The notes beneath the pieces were generated by a model that saw only the letters and a program-made list of their open reading frames with translations, was not told where the DNA came from and ran no database searches. Positions 1 to 62,152 of a DNA stretch of 64,000 nucleotides are shown here, one piece after another. Position numbers and translations under genes: made by a program. This stretch comes from Mytilus edulis (Eukaryota), in contig NC_092351.1 of assembly GCF_963676685.1 (NCBI RefSeq), forward strand, positions 36,890,001 through 36,954,000, in the 5' to 3' direction. The stretch's first letter is position 1; each line of letters starts with the position of its first letter.

Positions 1-474
1 TTTATCTCTATCTATAATAATATTCAAGATAATAACCAAAAACATCAAAATTTTCTCAAAATTACCAATTCAGGGGCAGCAACCCAACAACGGGTTGTCC
101 GATTCATCTGACAATTTCAGGGCAGATAGATCTTGACCTGATAAACAATTTTACCCCTGTCAGATTTGCTCTAAATGCTTTGGTTTTTGAGTTATAAGCC
201 AAAAACTGCATTTTAACCCTATGTTCTATTTTTAGCCATGGCGGCCATCTTGGTTGGTTGGGCGGGTCACCGGACACAATTTTTAAACTAGATACCCTAA
301 TAAAGATTTTGGCCATGTTTGGTTAAATTTGGCCCAGCAGTTTCAGAGGAGAAGATTTTTGTAAAAGTTAACGACGACGGACGCAGGACGACGGACGACG
401 ACGGACGACGACGGACGCCGGACGCCAAGTGATGAGAAAAGCTCACTTGGCCCTTTGGGCCAGGTGAGCTAAAA
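1..474 (-). mobile_element. Helentron-associated non-autonomous element (HINE-like), family A, 5' part
   Basis: Reverse complement of TTTTAGCTCACCTGGCCC..GGGCCAAGTGAGC, then a (CGT)n microsatellite and the core repeat; same family as 6310-8109. Confidence 0.75.
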
Positions 475-987
475 ATCTAATCAAATTGAGAAAGGAAATG
501 GCGAATATGTCAAAGCGACAACCACCCGACCATAGAGCAAACAACAGCCGAAGGCAACCAATGGGTCTTCAATGTAGCGAGGATTCCCGCACCCGTAGGT
601 GTCCTTCAGCTGGCCCCTAAAATATGCATAATAGTACAGTGATAATGGACGTCATACTAAACTCCGAATTATACACAAGAAACTAAAATTTAAAATCATA
701 CAAGACTAACAAAGGCCAGAGGCTCCTGACTTGGGACAGGCGCAAAATTGCGGCGGGGTTAAACATGTTTATGAGATCTCAACCCTCCCCCTATACCTCT
801 AGCCAATGTAGAAAAGTAAAAGAATAACAATACGCACATTAAAATTCAGTTCAAGAGAAGTCCGAGTCTGATGTCAAAAGATGTAACAAAAGAAAATAAA
901 TAAAATGACAATAATACATAAATAACAACAGACTACTAGCAGTTAACTGACAAGCCAGCTCCAGACCTCAATTAAACTGATTGAAAG

Positions 988-1078
988 ATTATGTCTTCAT
1001 CATATGAATATCAGGTACAATCCCTCCCGTTAGGGGTTTAGTATCATACTATCATAAAATATATGAGAAGAACATAAC
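988..1078 (-). promoter_or_regulatory. SECIS element (type II) in the 3' UTR of the PLE
   Basis: Minus strand: helix I TTATGTTCTTCTCATAT/ATATGATGAAGACATAA; core ATGA (1055-1052) with TGA (1013-1011); helix II AGTATGATACT/GGGATTGTACC; unpaired AAA (1039-1037); apical mini-stem CCC/GGG. Confidence 0.82.
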
Positions 1079-1119
1079 CCGTGTCATGCCAACAACTGTT
1101 TTTTTAGAAATAAATGTGT

Positions 1120-4100
1120 TTAGTTCCGATGCAAAGACCCTATCAGTGAATCAATGTTAAAGCCAAAATATGCAATCTTTAATGACCTGACAACAGTATC
1201 GTAACTATATCCCCTTTTAATAAGTCTATTTAAAGGTTTTGTTAGTTTCTGAGGAGAATACTGACATTTTTGTGCTTTATAAAGAATATTTCCATAAAAT
1301 TTTGGATGTGAAATACCTGAACGTATAAGATGTCTGCATGTTGAGTTATATTTACGAATTATTTCCTTATACCGGTGATAAAATTTAGTAAATGTTTTGA
1401 CCAGTTTGTGATATCGAAAACCCTGGTGTAATAATTTTTCAGTAATACATAAATTTCTCTCGCTAAAATCTAATACATTGTTACATACACGAGCGAATCG
1501 TACAAGTTGAGATATATAAACACCATAAGATGGTGACAAGGGAACGTCACCATCTAAAAATGGATAATTAACAATAGGAAATGAAAAATCATCTCTTTTA
1601 TCATAAATTTTTGTATTAAGCTTCCCGTTTATGATATAGATATCAAGATCGAGGAAAGGGCAGTGGTCATTGTTATCATTAGCTTTATTTAAAGTAAGTT
1701 CTACAGGATAAATTTCTTTAGTATACATACTGAAGTCGTCATTATTTAGAGCCAATATATCATCCAAATATCTAAAAGTATTGTTAAATTTTTGTATCAA
1801 ATGTTGTTTTGATGGGTCTTTGCTAATTTTAGTCATAAATTGTAACTCATAACAATACAAAAACAGGTCCGCAATAAGTGGTGCACAGTTAGTCCCCATT
1901 GGAATTCCAATAACTTGACGATATACGGAATCTCCAAAGCGAACAAAAATGTTATCAAGTAAAAATTCAAGTGCATAAATAGTATCAAAGCATGTCCAAT
2001 TGACATAGTTCTTTTGTTTATTGCTACTAAAAAATGATCTAAAAGAGTTTGAACATATGTACTCGCATTCCGACTTTTTAAATGCCCAGTTAATTAGGGA
2101 TGTGAATTTTTTCTTAATAAGAATATGAGGCAAAGTGGTATATAGGGTAGAAAAATCAAAACTTTGAACAGATTCAAAATCACCAATATATGCATGCAAT
2201 TTATCAAGTACTTCCAACGAGTTTTTGACACTCCAAAAGTAATTAATTCCACTATTTTCAAAGGCCTTATTTGAACAATTTATTATCAGGTTTTTTATTG
2301 TACCAAGTGTACTAGTAAGTAAAACAGACAATTTAGTAGTTGAACAATGGCTGGAAGATGAAATAAATCTATATTTGTAAGGTTTTTTGTGCAGCTTCGG
2401 AAGCCAGTACATAGTTGGGACTTTCATTGTGTTTGGTTCTGCTTGTAAAGAAGTAGCTAAAAGTTTATGTTTGTTACAGATGTCGTTTTCTGAAAATGAA
2501 GTCAGTTGGAATGTTGGTGAATTCGTGATTTCCTTTTGCAGAACCTCTATATAAAATTTACGTCAAACAATAATGATATTATTAGCAGCTTTATCAGCCG
2601 GGACAAAAACAAATTCCTTGGCTAGTTCTGTTAGTTTATTTTTGATACGCGAAATAGGGTTTTTATAGTTTTTGTTGAGGGTAAAATGTTCTTTAAAATG
2701 TTGTATTCGAATATCAACTATCTTCATTACTGAATTAAAAAAAGAGTCCAAAGATTTTTTGTCAGCTTTTTCCCGTTTTACCCATTTCAAACAGTAGGCG
2801 CGGAGTGAGTCGTTGATGATATTACGACACTCATTCCAGTTAATAGTTGACGGGGGACGATATTTAGGTCCTTTACTGAGGAATGATTTTAACTCTCGGT
2901 CGCGAACGATGTTAAGGTCTCCTGTTATAACATGGGAAATTGGTCCATAGGTGTATTCTGAATTACTGCAATTACACGACATAGGTGTATTTTCAGTGAT
3001 ATTTACATCTTTACACAATTGGCTATAATTAAACACATATTTTCGGGTAGATTTCTTGTAAATATAACAAATGAGAGGGAGTTCAGTATTATCAAAATAT
3101 CCAGGAATTTGGTCTTTAACAGAATGGTCGTTAAAAATACCGGCAATATTTACAAAATCAAAACCTTTATTGACATACTTTATTTTAATAAAATGTTTTT
3201 TATGATCTTCAGGGCGATCAATTTTTGGAAACATGTTAGAATAACAATATGCCATTATAATTTGGACAATTTCATACTTAGGACTGTAATATGAAATTGT
3301 GTTGCAATCCTCTAAAATTTTATTTAATTTATTTATAGGTAAAGAACAAAGCTTGGTTAACAGATAATGTCTGCCGTTGTTTTTTGAAATGGAAATTAGG
3401 TCCGAAATATTTGTATGGTTGGTCCGAAATTTTCTTTGATTGCGATTTTTTCTGCGTCCATGAGAACGATTTTTACGAACAGTTTTAGAAACTATATCCA
3501 AAATGTTAACAGAATCGGTTCTTGATATATTGCCAATTCCCATGATATTATCATTAAGACCGAGAGGGTAGACTGTCTGTAATTTTTTAATCCAATTTAA
3601 TTCATTTATTTTTCGTGATCGTACAAACTTGGAATGAGATTCACCAGGCTGCTTATTTACTACTTCTAAAGGTTGAACTGTTAAATATTTAATAGGATGA
3701 CTGTGCTTCTTAAGATGTTGATAAATGATACTTTTGAATTTATTGGGTCTTTTAAAACGATACAGGTGTTCTTGCGTGCGTTTAGATAAATATCGCCCAG
3801 TTTCACCTACGTACTGAATACCGCATCCCGGTTTGTTTCATGTGAGTAAATAAATAATACTGTTTGTTTTTCAAGTAATATCAGTTTCAAAATTTAGAGA
3901 AAATGTGCGACCATTAAATGTGGACCTTACTGTATTGTTGGTGGAAAGACGGGGACATGTAAGTCATTTTTTGGCATGACACTTATCGATAGAAGGGTAA
4001 CCACGATTTTTATTGTTGAAAACGTTAGCTATAGTAGTATTTTTAGATAAGCGATTCTGAAGATTGAGACGTGTAGATACCCTTTGAACGAGTTTAGTAT

Positions 4101-4128
4101 TTAATATTTTTCCATTTCTAAGCTTCAT
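1120..4128 (-). CDS. PLE polyprotein (GIY-YIG endonuclease + reverse transcriptase), 1002 aa with 4 in-frame TGA read as putative selenocysteine
   Basis: Manual translation joins ORFs 3964-4167, 2563-3543 and 1120-2427 in one frame: KCHAKK*LTCPRL..DIT*KTNSIIYLLT*NKPGCGIQYVGETGRYLSKRTQEH..ELNWIKKLQTVYPLGLND (GIY-YIG), then VPADKAANNIIIV*RKFY..MYWLPKLHK..FDFSTLYT..GIPMGTNCAP..RYLDD..FLDL (RT). TGA at 3964-3966, 3871-3873, 3838-3840 and 2563-2565; terminal TAA. Confidence 0.9.
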
Positions 4129-4357
4129 ATTTGTTTTTTGGTATGTAGATTTATTACAAAGGAGCAAAGACTGGCGTCCAGAATATGAACCATCACACAG
4201 TAGATTAAATTGTGTAAAAATGATAAAACTGTTCGGCTCAAGACGTCAAATGCTTATTGTCATAAGTTACCCGACAAATTTAACAAAAGATAGGGTATAT
4301 CAAGGTAGCGACTGACGTCTGACTAAATAGATGAATGGGGCTGAATTGATAGATATT

Positions 4358-5204
4358 CCTAAGTACATTTTTAGATTCAGCATATCAAAGAACCCCAAGG
4401 ATTCAATTTTTGTTAAAATCAAACTAAGTTTAATTTTGGACCCTTTGGACCTTAATGTAGATAAATTTTTGATGAAATCAAACAAAGTTCAATTTTTGGA
4501 CCCTTTGGGCCCCTTATTCCTAAAAACCTGTTGGGACCAAAACTCCCAAAATCTATCCCAACCGTTCTTTTGTGGTCATAAACCTTGTGTCAAAATTTCA
4601 TAGATTTCTATTAACTTAAACTAAAGTTATAGTGCAAAAACCAAGAAAATGCTTATTTGGGCCCTTTTTGGCCCTTAATTCCTAAAATGTTGGGACCAAA
4701 ACTCCCAAAATCAATCTCAACCTTCCTTTTGTGGTCATAAACCTTGTGTTTAAATTTCATTGATTTCTATTTACTTATACTAAAGTTATTGTGCGAAAAC
4801 CAAGAATAATGCTTATTTGGGCCCTTTTTTGGCCCCTAATTCCTAAACTATTTGAACTAAAACTCCCAAAATCAATCCCAACCTTCCTTTTGTGGTCATA
4901 AACCTTGTGTCAAAATTTCATAGATTTCTATTTACTTAAACTAAAGTTATAGTGCGAAAACCAAGAAAATGCTTATTTGGGCCCTTTTTGGCCCCTAATT
5001 CCTAAAATTTTGGGACCAAAACTCCCAAAATCAATCCCAACCTTCCTTTTGTGGTTATAAACCTTGTGTTAAAATTTCATAGATTTCTATTCACTTTTAA
5101 TAAAGTTTAGAGTGCGAAAACTAAAAGTATTCGGACGACGACGACGACGCCAACGTGATAGCAATAAACAACGAAAAATTAAAATTTTTGCGGTCGTATA
5201 AAAA
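4358..5204 (-). mobile_element. HINE-like element, family B, truncated
   Basis: Reverse copy of the 14535 element: TTTTTATACGACCGCA end, (CGT)n and about 150-bp tandem core units. Confidence 0.7.
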
Positions 5205-5821
5205 TCAATACAAGTCAGATCAATCAAGTAATTGCCATATATATAGAAAATTGATATTCATTTCAAATAATCCAACAAAAAATATTTGATCTTCGTACAG
5301 TGTAATGAAAAGATTACAAACTTGAGATGAATAACATAGTAAATCATAGTCAAATAAGAATTAGTAGTTTTATGAATAAATCAGATATATAAGAGACGAA
5401 TGTCTATATAATTTCTTTTGTCTTTGCCTTTTTATAGGAAAAGACAAGAAACTGCTAAGTAATACTGTGCTTCATTCATTATTAAAATAAGGAAAGGTTA
5501 AACAAAAAACAAAAATATCTTCAACTCAATTATACATTTATAGGCAAAATAAATACATTTGTGTCTGCTAAAGCTACCAACCCAAATCTTAAGTGCCTAC
5601 CCTTACACTTTTTTACCATTTTGGAACAATCACTGTTAAAGTCAGACTGATTCCCTAGTAGTAACCAGCTAAAAAAAAATTGTAAAATAAAATGATATTG
5701 CCTATCTACCATCCCTACATGTTTACATCATGTTAGCAGAAACTCAAGTATTTATTATTATTTTTTTGTTGTATGAGAAAAGCAAGTTTTCTTAAGATCC
5801 TCTAATCGAGACCCTTTATTA

Positions 5822-6031
<210 letters not shown>

Positions 6032-14534: not shown

Positions 14535-16820
14535 TTTTTATACGACCGCAAAATTTGAAAAATTTTTCGTCGTATATTGCTATCACGTTGGCGTCGTCGG
14601 TGTCGTCGGCGTCGTCGTCGTCGTCGTCGTCGTCCGAATACTTTTAGTTTTCGCACTCTAACTTTAGTAAAAGTGAATAGAAATCTATGAAATTTTAACA
14701 CAAGGTTTATGACCACAAAAAGAAGGTTGGGATTGATTTTGGGAGTTTTAGTCCCAACATTTTAGGAATTAGGGGCCAAAAAGGGCCCAAATAAGCATTT
14801 TCTTGGTTTTCGCACTATAACTTTAGTTTAAGTAAATAGAAATCTATGAAATTTTGACATAAGGTTTATGACCACAAAAGAAAGGTTGGGATTGATTTTG
14901 GGAGTTTTGGTTCCAACAGTTTAGGAATTAGGGGCCAAAAAAGGGCCCAAATAAGCATTATTCTTGGTTTTCGCACAATAACTTTAGTTTAAGTAAATAG
15001 AAATCAATGAAATTTAAACACAATGTTTATGACCACAAAAGGAAGGTTGGTATTGATTTTGGGAGTTTAGGTCCTAACAGTATAGGAATTAGGGGCCAAA
15101 AAGGGACCCAAATAAGCATTTTTTTTGGTTTTCGCGCCATAACTTTAGTATAAGTAAATAGAAATCTATGAAATTTAATCACAAGGTTTATGACCATAAA
15201 AGGAAGGTTGGTATTGATTTTGGGAGTTTTGGTCCCAACAGTTTAGGAATAAAGGGCCCAAAGGGTCCAGATTTAAACTTTGTTTGATTTTATCAAAAAT
15301 TGAATAATTGGGGTTCTTTGATATGCCGAATCTAACTGTGTATGTAGATTCTTAATTTTTGGTCCCGTTTTCAAATTGGTCTACATTAAGGTCCAAAGGG
15401 TCCAAAATTAAACTTAGTTTGATTTTAACAAAAATTGAATGCTTGGGGTTCTTTGATATGCTGAATCTAAAAATGTACTTAGATTTTTTTATTATTGGCC
15501 CAGTTTTCAAGTTGGTCCAAATCGGGGTCCAAAATTAAACTTTGTTTGATTTCATCAAAAATTGAATAATTGGGGTTCTTTGATATGCCAAATCTAACTG
15601 TGTATGTAGATTCTTAATTTTTGGTCCCGTTTTCAAATTGGTTTACATTAACGTCCAAAGGGTCCAAAATTAAACTAAGTTTGATTTTAACAAAAATTAA
15701 ATTCTTGGGCTTATTTGATATGCTTTATCTAAATATGTACTTTGATTTTTGATTATGGGCCCAGTTTTCAAGTTGGTCCAAATCAGGATTCCATATCAAG
15801 TATTGTGCAATAGCAAGAAATTTTCAATTGCACAGTATTGCACAATAGCAAGAAATATCTAATTGCACAATATTGTGCAATAGCAATCAATTTTCAATTG
15901 GAGTTATCTTTCTTTGTATAGAATAGTAGTTGATAATATATGTTGGAAATTTACCAGACATGACTATGATGTCATTTTCTATTTTTATTTGCCAATAACT
16001 TTATGTAAATAACTTCATTGGAAATTTGCCAATATAAAATGTTGCTGATGAAGCTTTTTTTCCTTATCTTATCTAAAATGTTTTTAGATAATGTATGTTG
16101 GACATTTGCCAGACATGACTATGATGTCATTTTCTATTTTTATTTGCCAATAACTTTATGTAAATAACTTCATTGGAAATTTGCCAATATTAAATGTTGC
16201 TGATGAAGTTTTTTTTATTGTTTTATACAATAAACAATGTATATTCACTTTTACTACCAACCAATCTTTACCATTCAGTGATAACAAGCACTTTATTTTA
16301 CATTTTAATATCTTATGATGTATTTAAAAGAGTAGTTATTGTTGCAAACTCCATTAGAAATTTGAATTGATATCAGTTTTGGAAAAAGGGAAACGGGGAT
16401 GTGAAAAAAGGGGGGGGGGGGGGGGGGGGGTTTAAATTTTTCTCATTTCAGATTTCATAAATAAAAAGAAAATTTCTTCAAACATTTTTTTGAGAGGATT
16501 AATATTCAACAGCATAGTGAATTGCTCAAAGGCAAAAAAAAAAACTTTTAAGTTCATTAGACCACATTCATTCTGTGTCAGAAACCTATGCTGTGTCAAC
16601 TATTTAATTTTAGATTTAAAAAATTTGAAGAAATCTTTAATTGATTTGTAAAATCTTGACATTTGTTTTGTGTAAAAAAAAAACATATAATGTCAAAAAT
16701 TTGATCACAATCCAAATTCAGAGCTGTATCACGCTTGAATGTTTTGTCCATACTTGCCCCAACTGTTCAGGGTTCGACCTCTGCGGTCGTATAAAGCTGC
16801 GCCCTGCGGAGCACCTGGTT
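14535..16820 (+). mobile_element. HINE-like element, family B, complete
   Basis: TTTATACGACCGCA..TGCGGTCGTATAAA subTIRs, (CGT)n, two kinds of internal tandem repeat, and a GC-rich 3' terminus. Confidence 0.72.
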
Positions 16821-25216: not shown

Positions 25217-28200
25217 GGTTTCTTGTGAACGTAGTTGTCTTGTTTCTTGTGTACAGAGTTGTAATATTTCTTGTGTACAGAGTTGTTTTGTTTCCTGTGT
25301 ACAGAGTTGTCTTGTTTCTTTTGTAAAGAGTTGTCTTGTTTCTTGTGTACAGAGTTGTCTTGTTTCTTGTGTTCATAATTGTCTTGCTTCTTGTGAACAG
25401 AGTTGTCTTGTTTCTTGTGAACAGAGTTGTTCTTGTTTCTTATGTACAGAGTTGTCTTGTTTCTTGTGTACAGAGTTGTCTTGTTTCTTGTGAACATAGT
25501 TGTCTTGTTTCCTGTGTACAGAGTTGTCATGTTTTTTGTGTACAAAGTTGTCTTGTTTCTTGTGTATAGAGTTGTATTATTTCTTGTGTACAGAGTTGTC
25601 ATGTTTCCTGTGTTCAGAGTTGTCTTGTTTCCTGTGTACAAAGTTGTCTTGTTTCTTGTGAACATAGTTGTCTTGTTTCCTGTCCACAGAGTTCTCTTGT
25701 TTCTTTTGTACAGTGTTGTCTTGTTTCTTGTGTACAGAGTTGTCTTGTTTCTTTTGTACAGAGTTATCGTGTTTCCTGTGTTCAGAGTTGTCTTGTTTCC
25801 TGTCTACAGAGTTGTCTTGTTTCTTTTGTACAGTGTTGTCTTGTTTCTTGTGTACAGAGTTGTCTTGCTTCTTGTGTACAGAGTTATCTTGTTTCCTGTG
25901 TTCAGAGTTGTCTTGTTTCTTTTGTACAGAGTTGTCTTGTTTCTTGTGTACAGAGTTGTCTTGTTTCTTTTGTACAGAGTTGTCTTGTTTCTTGTGTACA
26001 GAGTTGTCTTGTTTCCTGTGTACAGAGTTGTCTTGTTTCTTTTGTACAGAGTTGTCTTGTTTCTTGTGTTCAGAGTTGTATTGTTTCCTGTCTACAGAGT
26101 TGTCTTGTTTCTTTTGTACAGAGTTATCTTGTTTCCTGTGTTCAGAGTTGTCTTGTTTCTTTTGTACAGAGTTGTCTTGTTTCTTGTGTGCAGAGTTGTC
26201 TTGTTTCCTGTATACAGAGTTGTCTTTGTTTCTTGTGTACAGAGTTGTCTTGTTTCTTTTGTACAGAGTTGTCTTGTTTCTTTTGTACAGTGTTGTCTTG
26301 TTTCTTGTGTACAGAGTTGTCTTGTTTCCTGTGTACAGGGTTGTCTTGTTTCTTTTGTACAGTGTTGTCTTGTTTCTTGTGTTCAGAGTTGTCTTGTTTC
26401 CTGTCTACAGAGTTGTCTTGTTTCTTTTGTACAGAGTTATCTTGTTTCCTGTGTTCAGAGTTGTCTTGTTTCTTTTGTACAGAGTTGTCTTGTTTCTTGT
26501 GTGCAGAGTTGTCTTGTTTCCTGTATACAGAGTTGTCTTTGTTTCTTGTGTACAGAGTTGTCTTGTTTCTTTTGTACAGAGTTGTCTTGTTTCTTTTGTA
26601 CAGTGTTGTCTTGTTTCTTGTGTTCAGAGTTGTCTTGTTTCTTTTGTACAGAGTTGTCTTGTTTCTTTTGTACAGAGTTATCTTGTTTCCTGTGTTCAGA
26701 GTTGTCTTGTTTCCTGTGTTCAGAGTTGTCTTGTTTCTTTTGTACAGAGTTGTCTTGTTTCTTGTGTACAGAGTTGTCTTGTTTCCTGTGTTCAGAGTTG
26801 TCTTGTATCTTGTGTACAGAGTTGTCTTGTTTCTTGTGTACAGAGTTGTCTTGTTTCCTGTGTTCAGAGTTGTCTTGTTTCTTTTGTACAGAGTTGTCTT
26901 GTTTCCTGTGTACAGAGTTGTCTTGTTTCTTTTGTACAGTGTTGTCTTGTTTCTTGTGTTCAGAGTTGTCTTGTTTCCTGAGTTCAGAGTTGTCTTGTTT
27001 CTTTTGTACATAGTTGTCTTGTTTCCTGTCTACAGAGTTGTCTTGTTTCTTTTGTACAGTGTTGTCTTGTTTCCTGTGTTCAGAGTTGTCTTGTTTCTTT
27101 TGTACAGAGTTATCTTGTTTCCTGTGTTCAGAGTTGTCTTGTTTCTTTTGTACAGTTGTCTTGTTTCTTGTGTTTCTTGTGTACAGAGCTGTCTTGTTTC
27201 TTTTGTACAGAGTTATCGTGTTTACTGTGTTCAGAGTTGTCTTGTTTCCTGTGTACAGAGTTGTCTTGATTCCTGTATAAAGAGTTGTCTTGTTTCATTT
27301 GTACAGAGTTGTCCTGTTTCTTGTGTACAGAGTTGTCTTGTTTACTGTGCACAGAGTTGTCTTGTTTCCTGTGTAAGAAGTTGTCTTGTTTCCTGAGTAC
27401 AGAGTTGTCTTGTTTCCTGTGTACAGAGTTGTCTTGTCATCTTTCTTGTGTGACTTAGGAAGCCAATACATAGTGGGACACGTGGGATTTTTACACACCA
27501 CACACACAACATATTATTGTCCCTTGTTGATAGAAACAGAGGAACAAAATGATTGAAAAATCCTTCATTGAGTAACAGGATGTGACTAACAATGAATCCA
27601 AATAAAATGTCAACAGTTAACTTGTTGTTTTTAGTTGCTCACGCTTAGGCATAATCCTGAAATTTCCACCCATGCACTATAAACTAGAGTTGTCTTGTTT
27701 CTTTTGTACAGTGTTGTCTTGTTTCTTGTGTTCAGAGTTGTCTTGTTTCCTGTGTTCAGAGTTGTCTTGTTTCTTTTGTACAGAGTTGTCTTGTTTCTTG
27801 TGTACAGAGTTGTCTTGTTTCCTGTGTACAGAGTTGTCTTGTTTCTTGTGTTCAGAGTTGTCTTGTTTCCTGTCTACAGAGTTGTCTTGTTCCTTTTGTA
27901 CAGTGTTGTCTTGTTTCTTGTGTACAGAGTTGTCTTGTTTCCTGTCTGCAGAGTTGTCTTGTTTCTTTTGTCCAGAGTTGTCTTGTTTTTTGTGTACAGA
28001 GTTGTCTTGTTTCTTTTGTACAGTGTTGTCTTGGTTTTTTTTACAGAGTTGTCTTGTTTCTTGGGTACAGAGTTGTCTTGTTTCTTTTGTACAGAGTTGT
28101 CTTGTTTCCTGTGTTCAGAGTTGTCTTGTTTCTTGTGTACAGAGTTATCTTGTTTCCTGTGTTCAGAGTTGTCTTGTTTCTTGTGTACAGAGTTGTCTTG

Positions 28201-31200
28201 TTTCTTTTGTACAGAGTTGTCTTGTTTCTTTTGTAAAGAGTTGTCTTGTTTCTTGTGCACAGAGCTGTCTTGTTTCTTTTGTACAGAGTTATCCTGTTAC
28301 CTGTGTTCAGAGTTGTCTTGTTTCCTGTGTTCAGAGTTGTCTTGTTTCCTGTCTACAGAGTTATCTTGTTTCTTTTGTACAGTGTTGTCTTGTTTCTTGT
28401 GTACAGAGTTGTCTTGTTTCCTGTGAACAGAGTTGTCTTGTTTCTTTTGTACAGAGTTGTCTTGCTTCCTGTGTTCAGAGTTGTCTTGTTTCCTGCGTAC
28501 AAAGTTGTCTTGTTTCTTGTGAACATAGTTGTCTTGTTTCCTGTCCACAGAGTTGTCTTGTTTCTTTTGTACAGTGTTGTCTTGTTTCTTGTGTACAGAG
28601 TTGTCTTGTTTCTTTTGTACAGAGTTATCGTGTTTCCTGTTTTCAGATTTGTCTTGTTTCCTGTCCACAGAGTTCTCTTGTTTCTTTTGTACAGTGTTGT
28701 TTTGTTTCTTGTGTACAGAGTTGTCTTGCTTTTTGTGTACAGAGTTATCTTGTTTCCTGTGTTCTGAGTTGTCTTGTTTCTTTTGTACAGAGTTGTCTTG
28801 TTTCTTGTGTACAAAGTTGTCTTGTTTCTTGTGAACATAGTTGTCTTGTTTCTTGTGTTCAGAGTTGTCTTGTTTCTTTTGTACAGTGTTGTCTTGTTTC
28901 TTTTGTACAGTGTTGTCTTGCTTCTTGTGTACAGAGTTATCTTGTTTCCTGTGTTCAGAGTTGTCTTGTTTCTTTTGTACAGAGTTGTCTTGTTTCTTTT
29001 GTACAGTGTTGTCTTGTTTCTTTTGTACAGTGTTGTCTTGTTTCTTTTGTACAGAGTTGTCTTGTTTCCTGTGTACAGAGTTGTCTTGATTCCTTTATAC
29101 AGAGTTGTCTTGTTTCTTTTGTACAGTGTTGTCTTGTTTCTTGTGTACAGAGTTATCTTGTTTCCTGTGTTCAGAGTTGTCTTGTTTCTTTTGTACAGAG
29201 TTGTCTTGTTTCTTTTGTACAGAGTTGTCTTGTTTCCTGTGTTCAGAGTTGTCTTGTTTCCTGTGTTCAGAGTTGTCTTGTTTCTTTTGTACAGAATTGT
29301 CTTGTTTCTTGTGTACAGAGTTGTCTTGTTTCTTTTGTACAGAGTTATCTTGTTTCCTGTGTTCAGAGTTGTCTTGTTTCTTTTGTACAGAGTTGTCTTG
29401 TTTCTTGTGTACAGAGTTGTCTTGTTTCTTTTGTACAGAGTTATCATGTTTCCTGTGTTCAGAGTTGTCTTGTTTCCTGTCTACAGAGTTGTTTTGTTTC
29501 TTTTGTACAGTGTTGTCTTGTTTCTTGTTTATAGAGTTATCTTGTTTCCTGTGTTCAGAGTTGTCTTGTTTCTTTTGTACAGAGTTGTCTTGTTTTTTGT
29601 GTACAGAGTTGTCTTGTTTCCTGTCTTCAGAGTTGTCTTGTTTCTTTTGTACAGAGTTGTGTTGTTTCTTGTGTACATAGTTGTCTTGTTTCTTTTGTAC
29701 AGAGTTATCATGTTTCCTGTGTTCAAAGTTGTCTTGTTTCCTGTGTACAGAGTTGTCTTGTTTCTTTTGTACAGTTTTGTCTTGTTTCTTGTGTTCAGAG
29801 TTGTCTTGTTTCCTGTCTACAGAGTTGTCTTGTTTCTTTTGTACAGTGTTGTCTTGTTTCTTGTGTACAGAGTTGTCTTGTTTCTTGTGTACAGAGTTAT
29901 CTTGTTTCCTGTGTTCAGAGTTGTCTTGTTTCTTTTGTATAGAGTTGTCTTGTTTCTTGTGTACAGAGTTGTCTTGTTTCTTTTGTACAGTGTTGTCTTG
30001 TTTCTTGTGTTCAGAGTTGTCTTGTTTCCTGTCTACAGAGTTGTCTTGTTTCTTTTGTACAGTGTTGTCTTGTTTCTTGTGTACAGAGTTGTCTTGCTTC
30101 TTGTGTACAGAGTTATCTTGTTTCCTGTGTTCAGAGTTGTCTTGTTTCTTTTGTACAGAGTTATCTTGTTTCCTGTGTTCAGAGTTGTCTTGTTTATTTT
30201 GTACAGTTGTCTTGTTTCTTGTGTACAGAGCTGTCTTGTTTCTTTTGTACAGAGTTATCGTGTTTCCTGTGTTCAGAGTTGTCTTGTTTCCTGTGTACAG
30301 AGTTGTCTTGATTCCTGTATACAGAGTTGTCTTGTTTCTTTTGTACAGAGTTGTCCTGTTTCTTGTGTACAGAGTTGTCTTGTTTACTGTGTACAGAGTT
30401 GTCTTGTTTCTTTTGTACAGTGTTGTCTTGTTTCTTGTGTTCAGAGTTGTCTTGTTTCCTGTCTACAGAGTTGTCTTGTTTCCTGTGTACAGAGTTGTCT
30501 TGTTTTTTTTGTACAGTGTTGTCTTGTTTCTTGTGTACAGAGTTATCTTGTTTCCTGTGTTCAGAGTTGTCTTGTTTCTTTTGTACAGAGTTGTCTTGTT
30601 TCTTTTGTACAGAGTTGTCTTGTTTCCTGTGTTCAGAGTTGTCTTGTTTCCTGTGTTCAGAGTTGTCTTGTTTCTTTTGTACAGAATTGTCTTGTTTCTT
30701 GTGTACAGAGTTGTCTTGTTTCTTTTGTACAGAGTTATCTTGTTTCCTGTGTTCAGAGTTGTCTTGTTTCTTTTGTACAGAGTTGTCTTGTTTCTTGTGT
30801 ACAGAGTTGTCTTGTTTCTTTTGTACAGAGTTATCATGTTTCCTGTGTTCAGAGTTGTCTTGTTTCCTGTCTACAGAGTTGTCTTGTTTCTTTTGTACAG
30901 TGTTATCTTGTTTCTTGTGTATAGAGTTGTCTTGTTTCCTGTGTACATAGTTGTCTTGTTTCTTTTGTACAGAGTTGTCTTGCTTCTTGTGTACAGAGTT
31001 ATCATGTTTCCTGTGTTCAGAGTTGTCTTGTTTCTTTTGTACAGAGTTGTCTTGTTTTTTGTGTACAGAGATGTCTTGTTTCCTGTATTCAGAGTTGTCT
31101 TGTTTCTTTTGTACAGAGTTGTCTTGTTTCTTGTGTACATAGTTGTCTTGTTTCTTTTGTACAGAGTTATCATGTTTCCTGTGTTCAAAGTTGTCTTGTT

Positions 31201-31940
31201 TCCTGTGTACAGAGTTGTCTTGTTTCTTTTGTACAGTGTTGTCTTGTTTCTTGTGTTCAGAGTTGTCTTGTTTCCTGTCTACAGAGTTGTCTTGTTTCTT
31301 TTGTACAGTGTTGTCTTGTTTCTTGTGTACAGAGTTGTCTTGTTTCTTGTGTACAGAGTTATCTTGTTTCCTGTGTTCAGAGTTGTCTTGTTTCTTTTGT
31401 ACAGAGTTGTCTTGTTTCTTGTGTACAGAGTTGTCTTGTTTCTTTTGTACAGTGTTGTCTTGTTTCTTGTGTTCAGAGTTGTCTTGTTTCCTGTCTACAG
31501 AGTTGTCTTGTTTATTTTGTACAGTGTTGTCTTGTTTCTTGTGTACAGAGTTGTATTGCTTCTTGTGTACAGAGTTATCTTGTTTCCTGTGTTCAGAGTT
31601 GTCTTGTTTCTTTTGTACAGAGTTATCTTGTTTCCTGTGTTCAGAGTTGTCTTGTTTCTTTTGTACAGTTGTCTTGTTTCTTGTGTACAGAGCTGTCTTG
31701 TTTCTTTTGTACAGAGTTATCGTGTTTCCTGTGTTCAGAGTTGTCTTGTTTCCTGTGTACAGAGTTGTCTTGATTCCTGTATAAAGAGTTGTCTTGTTTC
31801 ATTTGTACAGAGTTGTCCTGTTTCTTGTGTACAGAGTTTTCTTGTTTACTGTGCACAGAGTTGTCTTGTTTCCTGTGTAAGAAGTTGTCTTGTTTCCTGA
31901 GTACAGAGTTGTCTTGTTTCCTGTGTACAGAGTTGTCTTG
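25217..31940. repeat. 24-bp tandem satellite array (AGAGTTGTCTTGTTTCYTKTGTWC), interrupted by a spacer at about 27437-27686
   Basis: Direct reading; 8-aa periodicity in all translated frames. Confidence 0.97.
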
Positions 31941-32446
31941 TCATCTTTCTTGTGTGACTTAGGAAGCCAATACATAGTGGGACACGTGGGATTTTTACAC
32001 ACCACACACACAACATATTATTGTCCCTTGTTGATAGAAACAGAGGAACAAAATGATTGAAAAATCCTTCATTGAGTAACAGGATGTGACTTACAATGAA
32101 TCCAAATAAAATGTCAACAGTTAACTTGTTGTTTTTAGTTGCTCACGCTTAGGCATAATCCTGAAATTTCCACCCATGCACTATAAACTAGAGCATGAAA
32201 TAAGGTCAAGCCAGCATTATGTGACAGAATTGTGCTTCATTCAAGAAACCACATATAAGTGTGAAAATAATGTCAAAACCAAAATATACATGACAAACAA
32301 AAATGCACTATTTTACATACTAATGTCATCTGTGCTTTATTTCTTGTAGAGAATATTTTCATATTGCATCTTGTTACATTTATACTTTGTTTATTGCATC
32401 ATGGAAAGTAAAATGTTATAATTAAAACCTCAAGATAGGACCTTGG

Positions 32447-57865: not shown

Positions 57866-60673
57866 TCAAATGTTTAAAAAATCCACCTGTACATCTTTCA
57901 AGTAAAAATTCACAAAAGTGTTGGCTTGACTCCAATCTGCACTATCTAAAATGTCTTTCATTTTTGCTCCTTTGAAAAGAGCCCAGGAAGGTCCAATTGA
58001 CCTAGTAGAATGTCCTTTCACTGAAGGAATATCTTTCTTCTGTTTCTTATATGCATGCTTAATCACCTTAACTAACCAACTTGAAATAGTTTGTGAAGAC
58101 ACTGGTCTATGTGGTTTATTTACAGTTAAAAACAATTTCAGTTCATCTTTGCCATTCTTGTCTCTTAAATCCTCTGTATTCCTCAAATAATGTGTCAAAG
58201 CCCTCTTAGGATCTAACAATCTGTTGTTCTCAAAAGCTGGAACAAAAATAGTTGGACTTTGATGAGAAATTCTATCTTGTTTTGACAAACCCTGACGTAA
58301 AAAAGTTACCCCTTTTTTCTGAACATTTACTGAACCTTCACCAATTCTCAAAGATTGCAAATCCCCACATCTTCTAAAAGTAGTAATTGCAATAAGAAAA
58401 ATTGTTTTCCAAGTTATATATTTCAAACTAGCTTTTTTCATTGGTTCATAAGGTTCTTTCTTTAGTAAGTCTAAGACTAAAGGTAAATCCCACTCGGGTA
58501 CAAGTTTTCGTTTAGGCGGTCTCGTATTAAAAACCCCTTTCAGTAATCTTATAATGTAAGGATGTTGACCAACAGGGATTTTTTCAATAGGAGATAATAC
58601 TGAAGACAGCATAGACCTGTAACCTGCAATTGTCCTATACTGTAAACCTTTGTCAAATAAATGTGTTAAAAAATTTGCACAATTTTCTAAAGAAGCTGTA
58701 TAGGGATAGATATCCCGTTCAGAACACCAGCTATTGTATTTTCTAAATTTAGCTTTGTAATCCTTTTGAGTACCTGCCCGCCAAGATGCTGACAAGAGTT
58801 TCCTAGCGTTTTCAGAAAAACCTTTTGTTTTGAGCTGCTGCTCGATAGTAGCCATGCAGTTAACTGAAACACTTCTGGGTTCGGATGTGCCACTTTTCTC
58901 TTGCCCTGAACCAGCAGATTTTCTACTAGTGGAAGTTTTAGAGGACAAGCTACTAGTAGTTGTAACAACTGGGGATACCAATGTTGTCTTGGCCAATGTG
59001 GAGCTATCAGTATTATCTCGCACTGAAATTTTTGCATGTGCTGTAAAATTTTTGGAATTAGTGCAAGGGGGGGAAATGCATAGGCAAACATGTTGTTCCA
59101 TTCTATGGATAGAGCATCCACTGCTAATGCTTGTGGGTGATTCATCCATGAGCAAAACACAACTGCTTTTTTGTTTTCGTTTGTCGCAAAAAGATCGATT
59201 GTTGGATGCCCCCAATTTTGAAAAATTTGATGCACAACTGAATTGTCTAATTCCCACTCTGTTGCCTGAATTTTTATCCGACTCAATTGATCTGCTAACA
59301 CATTGTTTACTCCCGCAATGTGTGCTGCTTTCAGATAAATTTTGTTTTCTAGGGCAAACATCCATAAATCCCAAGTCCTTTGACATAGCTGAAGTGACCG
59401 AGTCCCTCCTTGCTTGTTTATGTATTGGACTACCGTAACATTGTCTGACCGAATCAAAACTAGTTTGTTTTTCAAAAATTTCTGAAATTTCTTCACAGTC
59501 AGAAAAACTGCTTCCAATTCTAGATTGTTTATATGTAACAGTTTTTGCTCCTCTGTCCAAAGACCCTGAGCTGTTAGATTGTTCATGTGACCCCCCCAAC
59601 CCGACTTGGAGGCATCCGTCGTGATTGTAACTGAGGTCTGATTTTGTTTTAAAGATCTTCCCTGCATAATTTTTGCTAAAGACAACCACCATTTCAAATG
59701 AACTTTTAGGTTTGGAGTACATTGAATTTGAAAATCTAAACTCATTTTTGATGGGGTCCAATTTCGAAGTAAATGTAATTGGACAGGCCTCATAAATAAC
59801 CTGGCATTCGGAATCAACTCTAGACAAGATCCCATTTTCCCCAATACTTCCATGTAATGTCTGGCTGTTACCATGCCATTCATTACTTTTTGTACTGATA
59901 AAAATAGACTCTGTATCCTGTCCTGAGTTGGTAATACCAAACCTTGATCGAACTTGAACACCGCTCCCAAATAAGTGATTGTTTGATTTGGTATTAAACT
60001 GGACTTTTCGTGATTGATTAAAAAGCCTAGTCGAACAAGGAGATTCAACATTATTTCTCGATCTATTACAAGTTTTTGTTGAAACTGATTGACACACATC
60101 CAATCGTCTAGATATACTGCTAGACGTATGTTTTGTTTTCTTAAATGGGCAGCAACTACTGACACCACCTTCGTAAAAACTCGTGGTGATGATGTTGGGC
60201 CAAAACAAAGGGCTTTGAACTGGTAAACTTGACCTTGAACAGAAAATCTGAGGTATTTCCTGTGATTTTTGAATACTTTTATATGAAAATAAGCGTCTTT
60301 TAAGTCCAGACTTATTGCCCAATCTCCTTGTTTTACTAAGTTTAACACCTTTAAAATTGTGTCCATTTTGAAGTGTTGCTTCCGAAGATACTGATTTAGT
60401 GGTTTCAAATTTATAACCGGTCTCATTTGTCCATTCTTTTTTGGAACTAGGAATAATGTACTGTAAAAACCTGTCATTCGTTCTTTGACTGGTACTTTTT
60501 CTATAGCCCCTTTTTCCAAAAGAGAATTTATTTCTAAATTTAAAATATCCAAATTTTTTGTACTGACTACTGTCTTTTTTATTCCCTGAAAAGGAGGTTT
60601 TTGCAGAAACTCCAGTTTGTAACCGTCTTTGATTATTGACAGAACCCACTGATCCTGAGTTATCTGCTCCCAT
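57866..60673 (-). CDS. DIRS ORF3, tyrosine recombinase (recognisable domain in the C-terminal ~330 aa)
   Basis: TFRRCGDL..GHSTR..ADWSQANTFVNFY (R-HxxR-W-Y). Confidence 0.9.
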   Translation of the reverse strand: MGADNSGSVGSVNNQRRLQTGVSAKTSFSGNKKDSSQYKKFGYFKFRNKFSFGKRGYRKSTSQRTNDRFLQYIIPSSKKEWTNETGYKFETTKSVSSEATLQNGHNFKGVKLSKTRRLGNKSGLKRRLFSYKSIQKSQEIPQIFCSRSSLPVQSPLFWPNIITTSFYEGGVSSCCPFKKTKHTSSSISRRLDVCQSVSTKTCNRSRNNVESPCSTRLFNQSRKVQFNTKSNNHLFGSGVQVRSRFGITNSGQDTESIFISTKSNEWHGNSQTLHGSIGENGILSRVDSECQVIYEACPITFTSKLDPIKNEFRFSNSMYSKPKSSFEMVVVFSKNYAGKIFKTKSDLSYNHDGCLQVGLGGSHEQSNSSGSLDRGAKTVTYKQSRIGSSFSDCEEISEIFEKQTSFDSVRQCYGSPIHKQARRDSVTSAMSKDLGFMDVCPRKQNLSESSTHCGSKQCVSRSIESDKNSGNRVGIRQFSCASNFSKLGASNNRSFCDKRKQKSSCVLLMDESPTSISSGCSIHRMEQHVCLCISPPCTNSKNFTAHAKISVRDNTDSSTLAKTTLVSPVVTTTSSLSSKTSTSRKSAGSGQEKSGTSEPRSVSVNCMATIEQQLKTKGFSENARKLLSASWRAGTQKDYKAKFRKYNSWCSERDIYPYTASLENCANFLTHLFDKGLQYRTIAGYRSMLSSVLSPIEKIPVGQHPYIIRLLKGVFNTRPPKRKLVPEWDLPLVLDLLKKEPYEPMKKASLKYITWKTIFLIAITTFRRCGDLQSLRIGEGSVNVQKKGVTFLRQGLSKQDRISHQSPTIFVPAFENNRLLDPKRALTHYLRNTEDLRDKNGKDELKLFLTVNKPHRPVSSQTISSWLVKVIKHAYKKQKKDIPSVKGHSTRSIGPSWALFKGAKMKDILDSADWSQANTFVNFYLKDVQVDFLNI

Positions 60674-60864
60674 TCTTGTAAAAAATGTGTTAACCGCCCC
60701 CCGACCGGTATGTGTATCTTCGGAAACTTCACTTTTCTCACCTTGTCATCTAGAGTATCCTGAGGTTTTTCCTCCTCTACTGTTACTAGCCCCTCTTTTA
60801 AACTTAGGGATCCGAAAATGGGGAACTTCATTTTTAGTCTCACTATGCCCAACTTTTTTCTCAA
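58687..60864 (-). CDS. DIRS ORF2: reverse transcriptase, RNase H and methyltransferase-like domain
   Basis: LDLKDAYFHI, LCFG, YLDD; TTDAS..GWG, HINNLEL, RSDN; DLFA..YAFPP. Confidence 0.95.
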   Translation of the reverse strand: MRKKLGIVRLKMKFPIFGSLSLKEGLVTVEEEKPQDTLDDKVRKVKFPKIHIPVGGRLTHFLQEWEQITQDQWVLSIIKDGYKLEFLQKPPFQGIKKTVVSTKNLDILNLEINSLLEKGAIEKVPVKERMTGFYSTLFLVPKKNGQMRPVINLKPLNQYLRKQHFKMDTILKVLNLVKQGDWAISLDLKDAYFHIKVFKNHRKYLRFSVQGQVYQFKALCFGPTSSPRVFTKVVSVVAAHLRKQNIRLAVYLDDWMCVNQFQQKLVIDREIMLNLLVRLGFLINHEKSSLIPNQTITYLGAVFKFDQGLVLPTQDRIQSLFLSVQKVMNGMVTARHYMEVLGKMGSCLELIPNARLFMRPVQLHLLRNWTPSKMSLDFQIQCTPNLKVHLKWWLSLAKIMQGRSLKQNQTSVTITTDASKSGWGGHMNNLTAQGLWTEEQKLLHINNLELEAVFLTVKKFQKFLKNKLVLIRSDNVTVVQYINKQGGTRSLQLCQRTWDLWMFALENKIYLKAAHIAGVNNVLADQLSRIKIQATEWELDNSVVHQIFQNWGHPTIDLFATNENKKAVVFCSWMNHPQALAVDALSIEWNNMFAYAFPPLALIPKILQHMQKFQCEIILIAPHWPRQHWYPQLLQLLVACPLKLPLVENLLVQGKRKVAHPNPEVFQLTAWLLSSSSSKQKVFLKTLGNSCQHLGGQVLKRITKLNLENTIAGVLNGISIPIQLL

Positions 60865-62152
60865 ACTGTCTACTATTAAAATTTGGCTTATTTGAATAAC
60901 CAGAACGATCTGATGACTCTGTTTTGTCCTTTACCACATAAGGTTTCTTAGAACCAGAGGCTTCTGAAGAAGACACAGTCTTTCTCTTACCCAAATAGGA
61001 TTTTTTAACACTAATGTCTGGTAGTAAGTCGTCCAGAGCTTTATTTTTCTCTTTACGAGTCTTGAGAAATTTTTCAAAGTCAGATCCAAACACACCATCT
61101 GCTGATAATGGTAAATCAGACAAGTCTCTAGCCTCATCAATTTCATATAAACCTGTATCAGTCATAGCTACTTGCCTTCGTACAATGTGATGAAAAGTAC
61201 CTGTACGCCCCACTTGATCTAAGCTTTTAGTGGACATGGCAAATACATCTCTAACCTGTTGTATTGCTTTATTCGAATCTACATTGTCTGACTGTAAAGT
61301 TTGCATAAGCGCACCCAAACCTTGTTGCATGTACATATGCATAACAATACCCATGTAGGCAGCTTGTTGACCTCTGTAAGCTATTTTTTCAATCATTTTA
61401 CTAGGTTGACTGAATAAACATTTACCACCTTTTGTAAGTGAAGCTTTCTTGCCATGTTTTTTAATCAAACATCTACTTATCAAATCATCAATAGTAGGAA
61501 CCAGTAAAAAATTTTCAGTATCTTCATGTACTGGAAAATCATCTTTACTTTCTTCAGCAAAAGCAGAGACTAAATTAGGATGTTCAGCTCTCCAACTATT
61601 TAACAAAACCTGCTTTTGTGCCTCGTCAATTTCAATGCCCATTTTCTTTTCAGACTTTTTTGTCAAGGCATCATCCCCAAAGAGATCAAGCAAACACTTT
61701 TTTGTCTCTACGGACAAGTGTTCTTCATCAGAGGACTTTGTGTCCCACTCATTGTCACTTTCACCTAATATTTCATCGTCCCTAGGTCTGATTGAAACAT
61801 TGTCATCAGAATTTTCATTTTCTGACAGTTCCCGGCGCAAACTTTGTGTATGCTCACGCTCACGACCTTCAGGTTGTCTTTGTGACAAACCTTTTGCCTC
61901 AGAATTTTTGTCGCCATTTTCGGCACAATTCTTGGCTTGAAACAATGTTATTAAAGTATCAAATTTTTCATTTACATTGTCCAACTTACTGTTCATTTTC
62001 TCTTCAAGAATGTCATATCTGCTTCTCCGCTTTTTCTTCGTCTTTGAACTTGAAGAACTGGTTTTTCTAATGCCAATGGCGGTTCCCGCGCCATTAACAC
62101 TGCTCTCATCTCGTGGTTCATCCACGTGCTCACTAGTACTGTCGCTATTCAT
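60746..62152 (-). CDS. DIRS ORF1 (gag-like)
   Basis: 468-aa ORF starting just inside the 5' ITR and overlapping ORF2; assigned by position. Confidence 0.8.
   Translation of the reverse strand: MNSDSTSEHVDEPRDESSVNGAGTAIGIRKTSSSSSKTKKKRRSRYDILEEKMNSKLDNVNEKFDTLITLFQAKNCAENGDKNSEAKGLSQRQPEGREREHTQSLRRELSENENSDDNVSIRPRDDEILGESDNEWDTKSSDEEHLSVETKKCLLDLFGDDALTKKSEKKMGIEIDEAQKQVLLNSWRAEHPNLVSAFAEESKDDFPVHEDTENFLLVPTIDDLISRCLIKKHGKKASLTKGGKCLFSQPSKMIEKIAYRGQQAAYMGIVMHMYMQQGLGALMQTLQSDNVDSNKAIQQVRDVFAMSTKSLDQVGRTGTFHHIVRRQVAMTDTGLYEIDEARDLSDLPLSADGVFGSDFEKFLKTRKEKNKALDDLLPDISVKKSYLGKRKTVSSSEASGSKKPYVVKDKTESSDRSGYSNKPNFNSRQFEKKVGHSETKNEVPHFRIPKFKRGASNSRGGKTSGYSR

Follow-up and report, generated by a model that had tools for sequence, protein, structure and literature searches.

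The minus strand of a 64,000-nt stretch of Mytilus edulis DNA (contig NC_092351.1, positions 36,890,001 to 36,954,000; hereafter the window, whose numbering is used unless another contig is named) carries a copy of a Penelope-like element (PLE) of the Naiad clade, and the endonuclease and reverse transcriptase (RT) gene of this copy is interrupted by four in-frame TGA codons. The element very probably represents a very young, high-copy retrotransposon family whose 1002-codon gene is a selenoprotein gene, with selenocysteine (Sec, U) predicted at all four UGAs under the control of a single selenocysteine insertion sequence (SECIS) element.

Between 4128 and 1120, the minus strand can be translated as a single frame of 1002 sense codons ending in TAA (1120–1122). 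Direct translation of this open reading frame (ORF; 1120–4128) revealed no frameshift and no internal TAA or TAG. Its internal stops are four in number and all are TGA (codons 55, 86, 97 and 522), which places the UGAs 165, 258, 291 and 1566 nt from the AUG of the element mRNA. A reading made earlier from the letters of the window alone (the sequence-only reading) had joined three separately called ORFs into one 1002-codon frame interrupted only by TGAs in cysteine (Cys) contexts and free of frameshifts. Retranslation gave the same frame, the mechanical ORF list contains all three ORFs (1120–2427, 2563–3543 and 3964–4167), and the quoted contexts were correct on re-reading: C50-HAKK-U55-LT-C58 for the first TGA, U86-KTNSIIYLLT-U97-NKPG-C102-GIQYVGET for the second and third, and PADKAANNIIIV-U522 for the fourth. 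Since the ORF also contains 25 ordinary Cys codons (18 TGT and 7 TGC), TGA is not a general Cys codon here. The element comprises the following features, all on the minus strand (UTR, untranslated region):

479..4363, minus strand: Naiad element copy, delimited by homology with 29 other copies (from 4346 to 471–483) and by junction alignments
4129..4363, minus strand: remnant of the 5' UTR, truncated and with an internal 17-nt deletion
1120..4128, minus strand: ORF of 1002 codons plus TAA; N-terminal GIY-YIG endonuclease, linker and C-terminal RT, with four in-frame TGAs
3553..3981, minus strand: endonuclease region, with CX4UxxC at 3955–3981, the GIY-YIG core with U86, U97 and C102 at 3799–3873, and a conserved C-terminal block, WIKKLQTVYPLGLN, at 3553–3594
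3964..3966, minus strand: TGA codon 55, second Cys of a CX4CxxC zinc-finger-like motif (C50, U55, C58)
3871..3873, minus strand: TGA codon 86, conserved Cys immediately ahead of the GIY-YIG motif
3838..3840, minus strand: TGA codon 97, first Cys of the CCHH motif within the GIY-YIG core
2857..3477, minus strand: Naiad linker, with a KR-rich block at 3424–3477, CxC (S-C385-N-C387-S) at 2965–2979 and GxKY (KGPKYR) at 2857–2874
1123..2601, minus strand: RT, from the DKA motif (2563–2601) through the RT core (e.g., FRYLDDIL at 1753–1776)
2563..2565, minus strand: TGA codon 522, Cys eight residues past the DKA motif at the start of the RT
479..1119, minus strand: 3' UTR of 641 nt containing the SECIS, defined by copy and junction alignments
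996..1070, minus strand: SECIS, beginning 55 nt past the TAA, with AUGA/GA core, unpaired AAA and 3-bp mini-stem

The protein was assigned by means of its homologues. A library-wide HMMER search, for which the 424 residues separating U97 from U522 served as the query, yielded 2771 relatives, and those among the best 150 of them that had at least 840 residues and Cys at the TGA sites were taken as full-length Cys-type homologues (n = 49). A profile built from the window RT piece and 27 homologues matched the catalytic domain of I-TevI (E 1.4e-3, profile positions 69–156) and a group II intron RT (E 6.5e-3, positions 727–788). Pfam returned no relevant family for the three ORF pieces of the window, and the N-terminus of Cys-type homologues passed or neared the Pfam GIY-YIG threshold at the same place as in the window ORF; the window protein alone lacks a match because its GIY-YIG domain is split by UGA. 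By the profile and by Pfam on the homologues, a GIY-YIG endonuclease precedes the RT within one ORF, as in Naiads. A phmmer search of the RT piece against PDB sequences gave nothing useful. Among PDB structures, the AlphaFold model of residues 523–1002 (pLDDT 86.7, pTM 0.80) matched telomerase RTs best (E 2e-9, TM ~0.5), followed by the RTs of group II introns and retrons, and its predicted fold is that of the PLE/telomerase-type RT carried by Naiads.

The motifs diagnostic of Naiads, namely the KR-rich block, CxC, GxKF/Y and DKA replacing DKG, have been defined (PMC8557442). In the window ORF they appear as the KR-rich RKNRSHGRRKNRNQRKFR (residues 218–235), SCNCS (384–388), KGPKYR (419–424) and PADKAANN (510–517). 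The Cys motifs of the Naiad endonuclease are represented by C50-x4-U55-x2-C58 and U97-x4-C102, all in invariant Cys columns, with the CCHH motif mapped for its two Cys. At the family level, copies show 5' truncation and partial tandems acting as pseudo-long terminal repeats (pseudo-LTRs); a search of window positions 1–6000 for hammerhead ribozymes, which Naiads lack in canonical form, found none at E up to 10. The element is a Naiad-clade Penelope-like retroelement.

The positions of the four TGAs were compared with the 49 Cys-type homologues. Only nine alignment columns were at least 90% Cys (50, 55, 58, 86, 97, 102, 385, 387 and 522), and the TGAs occupy four of these nine, for which the chance with four random codons is about 6.5e-9. 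Cys was present in all homologues without a gap at sites 55 (37/37), 86 (44/44) and 97 (45/45), and in all 49 at site 522. Two claims of the sequence-only reading agree with this: the assignment of each TGA to a Cys context, as all four fell on invariant Cys and on nothing else, and the argument that random decay would not yield TGA only and at Cys only. In the protein library, at least seven ORF fragments, in addition to two cluster members, end exactly ahead of site 522, and some likewise end exactly ahead of the codon for site 385.

A SECIS was found in the 3' UTR, as had been suggested for checking, both with Rfam and with a covariance model of our own. Rfam SECIS_1 matched at 1001–1065 of the minus strand with 30.9 bits and an E value of 0.004, the gathering score being 35 bits. 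A covariance model built from the SECIS of six families scored 65.4 bits here and had its sole match in the 64-kb window at this place. In the consensus fold of the six families, the AUGA/GA core separates helix I from helix II, and an unpaired AAA and the 3-bp mini-stem complete the structure; the mini-stem makes the SECIS type II-like. Of the 20 pairs in this consensus, 12 have changed on both sides with pairing retained. Among the fetched copies of the family, 44 of 51 instances of the SECIS were identical. Rfam SECIS_1 also lay directly past the stop in 8 of the 11 relatives searched (two of these being metagenome copies of the window's own family), and in a local search it matched L054 as well. 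Further metagenome contigs matched by the six-family model were L041, L056 and L058, with a weak match in L044. Altogether, at least 11 related families have a SECIS past the stop, including relatives that are about 45% identical; a SECIS with the AUGA...AA...GA core occurs at a conserved position and with covariation.

A metagenome scan gave 24 loci, 17 of which have frames of about 370–1080 codons interrupted by TGA only and are 38–63% identical to the window family. Apart from two TGAs private to one contig each and TGAs upstream of the start, the TGAs of these relatives are confined to five of the nine Cys columns. Every locus covering site 522 (16 long relatives) has TGA there, as have 16 of the 18 relatives covering site 97; TGA occurs at site 86 in most metagenome relatives, at site 385 in ten and at site 55 in seven. 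Site 55 is TGA in L049/L050 and in sister family B described below. The number of Sec sites per relative frame ranges from one to five (L041–L059). L042 has only the TGA of site 522, and L050 has an extra sixth TGA, which lies outside the Cys columns at window residue 567. The window's genome lacks the L048 type, the best match there being 54%. The ratio of nonsynonymous to synonymous substitution rates (dN/dS) over whole read-through frames was 0.07–0.17, indicating that the sequence downstream of the TGAs is under purifying selection. In-frame UGAs thus stand where homologues have Cys and are followed by a conserved frame, as expected for selenoprotein genes.

In a maximum-likelihood tree, 16 UGA-bearing sequences formed one clade (SH-aLRT 100) apart from 15 Cys-type homologues, and the window family grouped with L054/L055, to which it is 63% identical. 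The scatter of Sec and Cys states on this tree, which is unrooted and came from a quick search, points to repeated exchange between them.

The window's own genome (1.37 Gb) contains three kinds of Naiads. First, the window family was represented by more than 4600 first-look candidates for a 3.4-kb query, of which 40 scored matches were full length and 99.6–99.8% identical. Searches of the genome with the window's DNA or protein sequence, in which only the best candidates were scored, gave this young family only; divergent families were reached using relatives as queries. Second, sister family B (L065, C9:793721-798166, and L067, C3:86394630-86399075; in metagenomes, contigs L054 and L055) has 63% amino acid identity to the window ORF and shares its four UGA sites. 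A fifth UGA stands for the first Cys of its CxC motif, where the window family has an ordinary TGT (C385), and a SECIS lies in the 3' UTR about 136 nt past the stop. Many copies of family B have an intact ORF, and the five-TGA frame was intact in two fetched copies. Third, a Cys-only Naiad family (L072, C12:30940548-30946229, and at least 40 similar loci), 39% identical to the window ORF, encodes Cys by TGT or TGC at each of the nine sites, and many of its frames, about 1000 codons long, are open. Since a Cys-only family exists beside the Sec families, Sec use is a property of one Naiad lineage and not a host requirement.

All four TGAs were kept in 30 of 30 fetched copies of the window family, and 28 of the 30 had no other stop. 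The TGAs are accordingly not private to this copy; private TGAs were what the sequence-only reading had named as overturning it. The 424-aa middle segment was uninterrupted in 96 of the 99 best-scoring genomic protein matches. Near-identical copies lie on at least 11 large contigs with differing flanks and variable points of 5' truncation. Full units are spaced 4030–4031 bp apart in tandems, the full unit being about 4030 bp long, and most full-length copies are preceded by a 5'-truncated copy, i.e., a pseudo-LTR. Junction alignment showed the common 3' end of the copies to be ...CTCAATTT.

The window copy itself deviates from this pattern. Beyond 4346, the full unit has 163 more 5' bases, of which the window keeps 17 (4347–4363); about 128 nt of the 5' end are absent, and 17 nt are deleted between 4346 and 4347. 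An upstream partial copy (pseudo-LTR) is missing. When compared with the majority letters of the 30 copies, which were used only for counting differences, the window ORF showed five differences. Among them are K298N and L299M, two private replacements lying side by side in a block where relatives keep KL. Because of the 5' truncation, the missing pseudo-LTR and the two private substitutions, activity of the window copy itself is doubtful. The earlier description as intact therefore holds for the ORF only, while the family is clearly recent. With its ORF intact, the window copy is nonetheless probably not a source element but a passive product of the recent burst.

Tandem arrays of repeats of about 135–160 bp (window 4359–5121 and 14647–15785) flank the 5' end of the element. 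Positions 4373–4500 were covered about 830–850-fold in RNA reads, many of which join back to 4359; this depth and these joins indicate another abundant, transcribed repeat family.

The host possesses machinery for Sec decoding, for which tRNA-Sec and SepSecS were searched. Five tRNA-Sec loci scored above the Rfam cut-off (77–80 bits), with the anticodon TCA confirmed by ARAGORN, and SepSecS was found as six colinear exons. As a separate observation, at least 40 tandem units repeating about every 895 bp were noted at C10:14401393-14442259 and on contig C945. Each unit includes a tRNA-like sequence just below the tRNA-Sec cut-off (45.9 bits), and the array probably consists of ordinary tRNA genes or of a repeat derived from a tRNA.

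The window's family is transcribed. The element was present in 20 public runs, which belong to 14 studies and are labelled with three species names or with several mollusc or aquatic metagenome terms, and raw RNA-seq reads cover the ORF. In run X23, first mates mapped between 2318 and 3961 with 14–41x on the plus strand versus 1–7x on the minus strand. The excess in the expected sense was about 4- to 30-fold over 2318–3824 and about 2-fold in the next bin to 3961. Given the usual construction of stranded libraries, this plus-strand excess of first mates indicates transcripts of the ORF sense strand. No variant at codons 86, 97 and 522 was among the RNA-read variants listed. Editing of the UGAs in RNA finds no support at these three codons, as no A-to-G change there was among the variants listed; codon 55 was barely covered.

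Taken as a selenoprotein gene, the element would work as follows. Each of the four mRNA UGAs would stand for a Cys without variation among other Naiads. Located in the 3' UTR, 55 nt past the UAA, the SECIS hairpin would recruit the Sec-decoding machinery of the host, and ribosomes would insert Sec at all four UGAs and so reach the RT domain. The proposal of a recoded Sec ORF of a PLE in the sequence-only reading has gained support from TGA fixation, the Cys alignment, the SECIS and a published precedent (PMC8557442). The Sec residues may serve at presumed metal-binding or redox sites, and transposition may depend on selenium.

Several observations weigh against this interpretation. Sec insertion is deduced from sequence and not from protein. 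The UGAs lie 1.5–2.9 kb from a single SECIS and four of them would have to be decoded in series, so inefficiency is expected. The SECIS scores below the Rfam gathering score. Retention of the TGAs among the 30 copies is without statistical power at about 0.3% divergence: the low divergence shows that TGA was present in the source element and does not thereby show selection, and the argument for selection consequently rests on the comparisons between families. As for transcription, strands were mixed in run X22 and its coverage was thinner than that of X23, RNA reads could not be assigned to the window copy, and the region 3962–4235, with the first UGA and the 5' end, was almost uncovered by RNA at 97% identity.

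Three other explanations were weighed. The UGAs might be passed without Sec, either through near-cognate read-through inserting Cys, Trp or Arg, or as leaky stops by which the amount of full-length protein is set relative to short N-terminal products, the SECIS-like hairpin being idle or otherwise used. Two of the UGAs (codons 55 and 522) are followed by C, and UGA then C is a leaky stop context. The modest Rfam score would also fit, as would the fact that Sec insertion in Naiads is so far a prediction from sequence. However, at least 11 related families have, past the stop, a SECIS with the AUGA/AA/GA core and compensatory changes, UGA occurs in Cys columns only and never in Trp or Arg columns, and the Cys-type family of the same genome does without such UGAs. 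This explanation is thus considered improbable.

Slightly less credit still is given to a selenoprotein retroelement that is immobile now, its copies dating from a past burst or duplication and its RNA from read-through of host genes. It would agree with the 5'-truncated window copy devoid of a pseudo-LTR and with the about equal coverage of both strands in the 3' part and in run X22. It is at odds with copies that are 99.6–99.8% identical on at least 11 large contigs with differing flanks and variable 5' truncation, with the open state of most sampled ORFs, and with the sense-strand excess in run X23 across the 5' two-thirds of the ORF. A decaying pseudogene with the four TGAs as ordinary nonsense mutations, which is what annotation pipelines would call the frame and to which true nonsense mutations in 2 of the 30 copies (one TAA, one TAG) might seem to point, is refuted by the comparative sequence data, since the interruptions are TGAs only and confined to four of nine invariant Cys columns, recur in 30 of 30 copies, are common to families 38–63% identical with low dN/dS, and are accompanied by a SECIS.

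Selenoprotein Naiads, a rare kind of element, have been described by Craig et al. 2021 (PMC8557442) in four families, two from clams and two from spiders, which so far are the only selenoprotein-coding transposons known. This bears out the statement in the sequence-only reading that Naiad-clade PLEs include selenoprotein members. All four published families have UGA at the Cys ahead of GIY-YIG and at the Cys eight residues past DKA, and in three of them a Grade A, type I SECIS lies 1–21 nt past the stop (PMC8557442). The clam families have the same architecture as the window family and share with it the UGAs at the pre-GIY-YIG Cys, the first Cys of CCHH and the Cys eight past DKA; like the window element, they have a SECIS past the true stop and several Sec codons, three or four in their case (PMC8557442). 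They differ in the fourth site, since the fourth UGA of Naiad_Scon is at the poorly conserved RT6(D) position, whereas that of the window is at the second Cys of CX4CxxC (PMC8557442). The SECIS differs as well, being type II-like with a mini-stem and 55 nt past the stop in the window, versus type I and 1–21 nt in the published families (PMC8557442). In the spider families Naiad_Sdum and Naiad_Smim (Stegodyphus), UGA occurs in the CX2-5CxxC finger (at the first, or the first and second Cys), ahead of GIY-YIG and after DKA, and Naiad_Sdum has four Sec codons, as has the window element (PMC8557442). [quoted passage not shown] Compared by description, the combination found in the window (the three clam sites and the second finger Cys) occurs in none of the four published families. 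No later report of seleno-Naiads in mussels was found in a literature search.

Selenoprotein P likewise combines several UGAs in one ORF with a SECIS in the 3' UTR and is especially Sec-rich in bivalves (cited in PMC8557442). It is, however, a selenium-transport protein of the host and unrelated to the window element in sequence and function. Typically, selenoprotein P has two SECIS elements. The canonical PLEs Penelope, Poseidon and Neptune share with the window element the RT resembling telomerase RT, the GIY-YIG endonuclease, 5' truncation and insertions with pseudo-LTRs. They differ in that their endonuclease is C-terminal, whereas that of the window element is N-terminal, in that their pseudo-LTRs carry hammerhead ribozymes, and in that no UGA recoding is known from them.

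The phenomenon is that of Craig et al. 2021, to which the window element adds a family, not a principle. The family added is a seleno-transposon from a third host lineage, where its near-identical, transcribed copies number in the thousands. Beyond the 2021 description are the coexistence in one genome with a five-Sec sister family and with a Cys-only Naiad family, a Sec site within CxC that PMC8557442 does not list, and the grouping of all sampled UGA-bearing relatives in one clade with frequent exchange of Sec and Cys. Seleno-Naiads get mis-annotated as pseudogenes or as three separate ORFs. They provide a natural system in which to study how several UGAs are decoded by means of one SECIS, and to ask if new selenoprotein genes arise from SECIS elements that transposable elements have dispersed.

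A wider picture may be drawn, tentatively. One clade of UGA-bearing Naiads would have exchanged Sec and Cys repeatedly at five of the nine Cys sites, with one to five Sec per frame, so that four-Sec, five-Sec and Cys-only families coexist with many open copies each. If Sec at these presumed metal-binding sites tunes or gates the endonuclease or the RT, the Sec families could transpose only as far as the supply of selenium and the capacity to decode Sec allow. Dispersed 3' ends, in their thousands, would also provide the genome with functional SECIS elements open to capture by host genes.

Two further features were noted in the window. On the minus strand at 57866–62152, a frame of about 1400 codons consists of two ORFs (468 and 935 aa) with one stop between them. 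By eye, the C-terminal part of this frame resembles a DIRS- or Crypton-type tyrosine recombinase, and Pfam gave no match for the frame at E up to 1e-3. At 25218–31941, a 6.7-kb minisatellite is formed by about 280 copies of a 24-bp unit (GTTTCTTGTGTACAGAGTTGTCTT) with 84% match, which accounts for the strong local AT/GC skew and for a cluster of spurious long ORFs.

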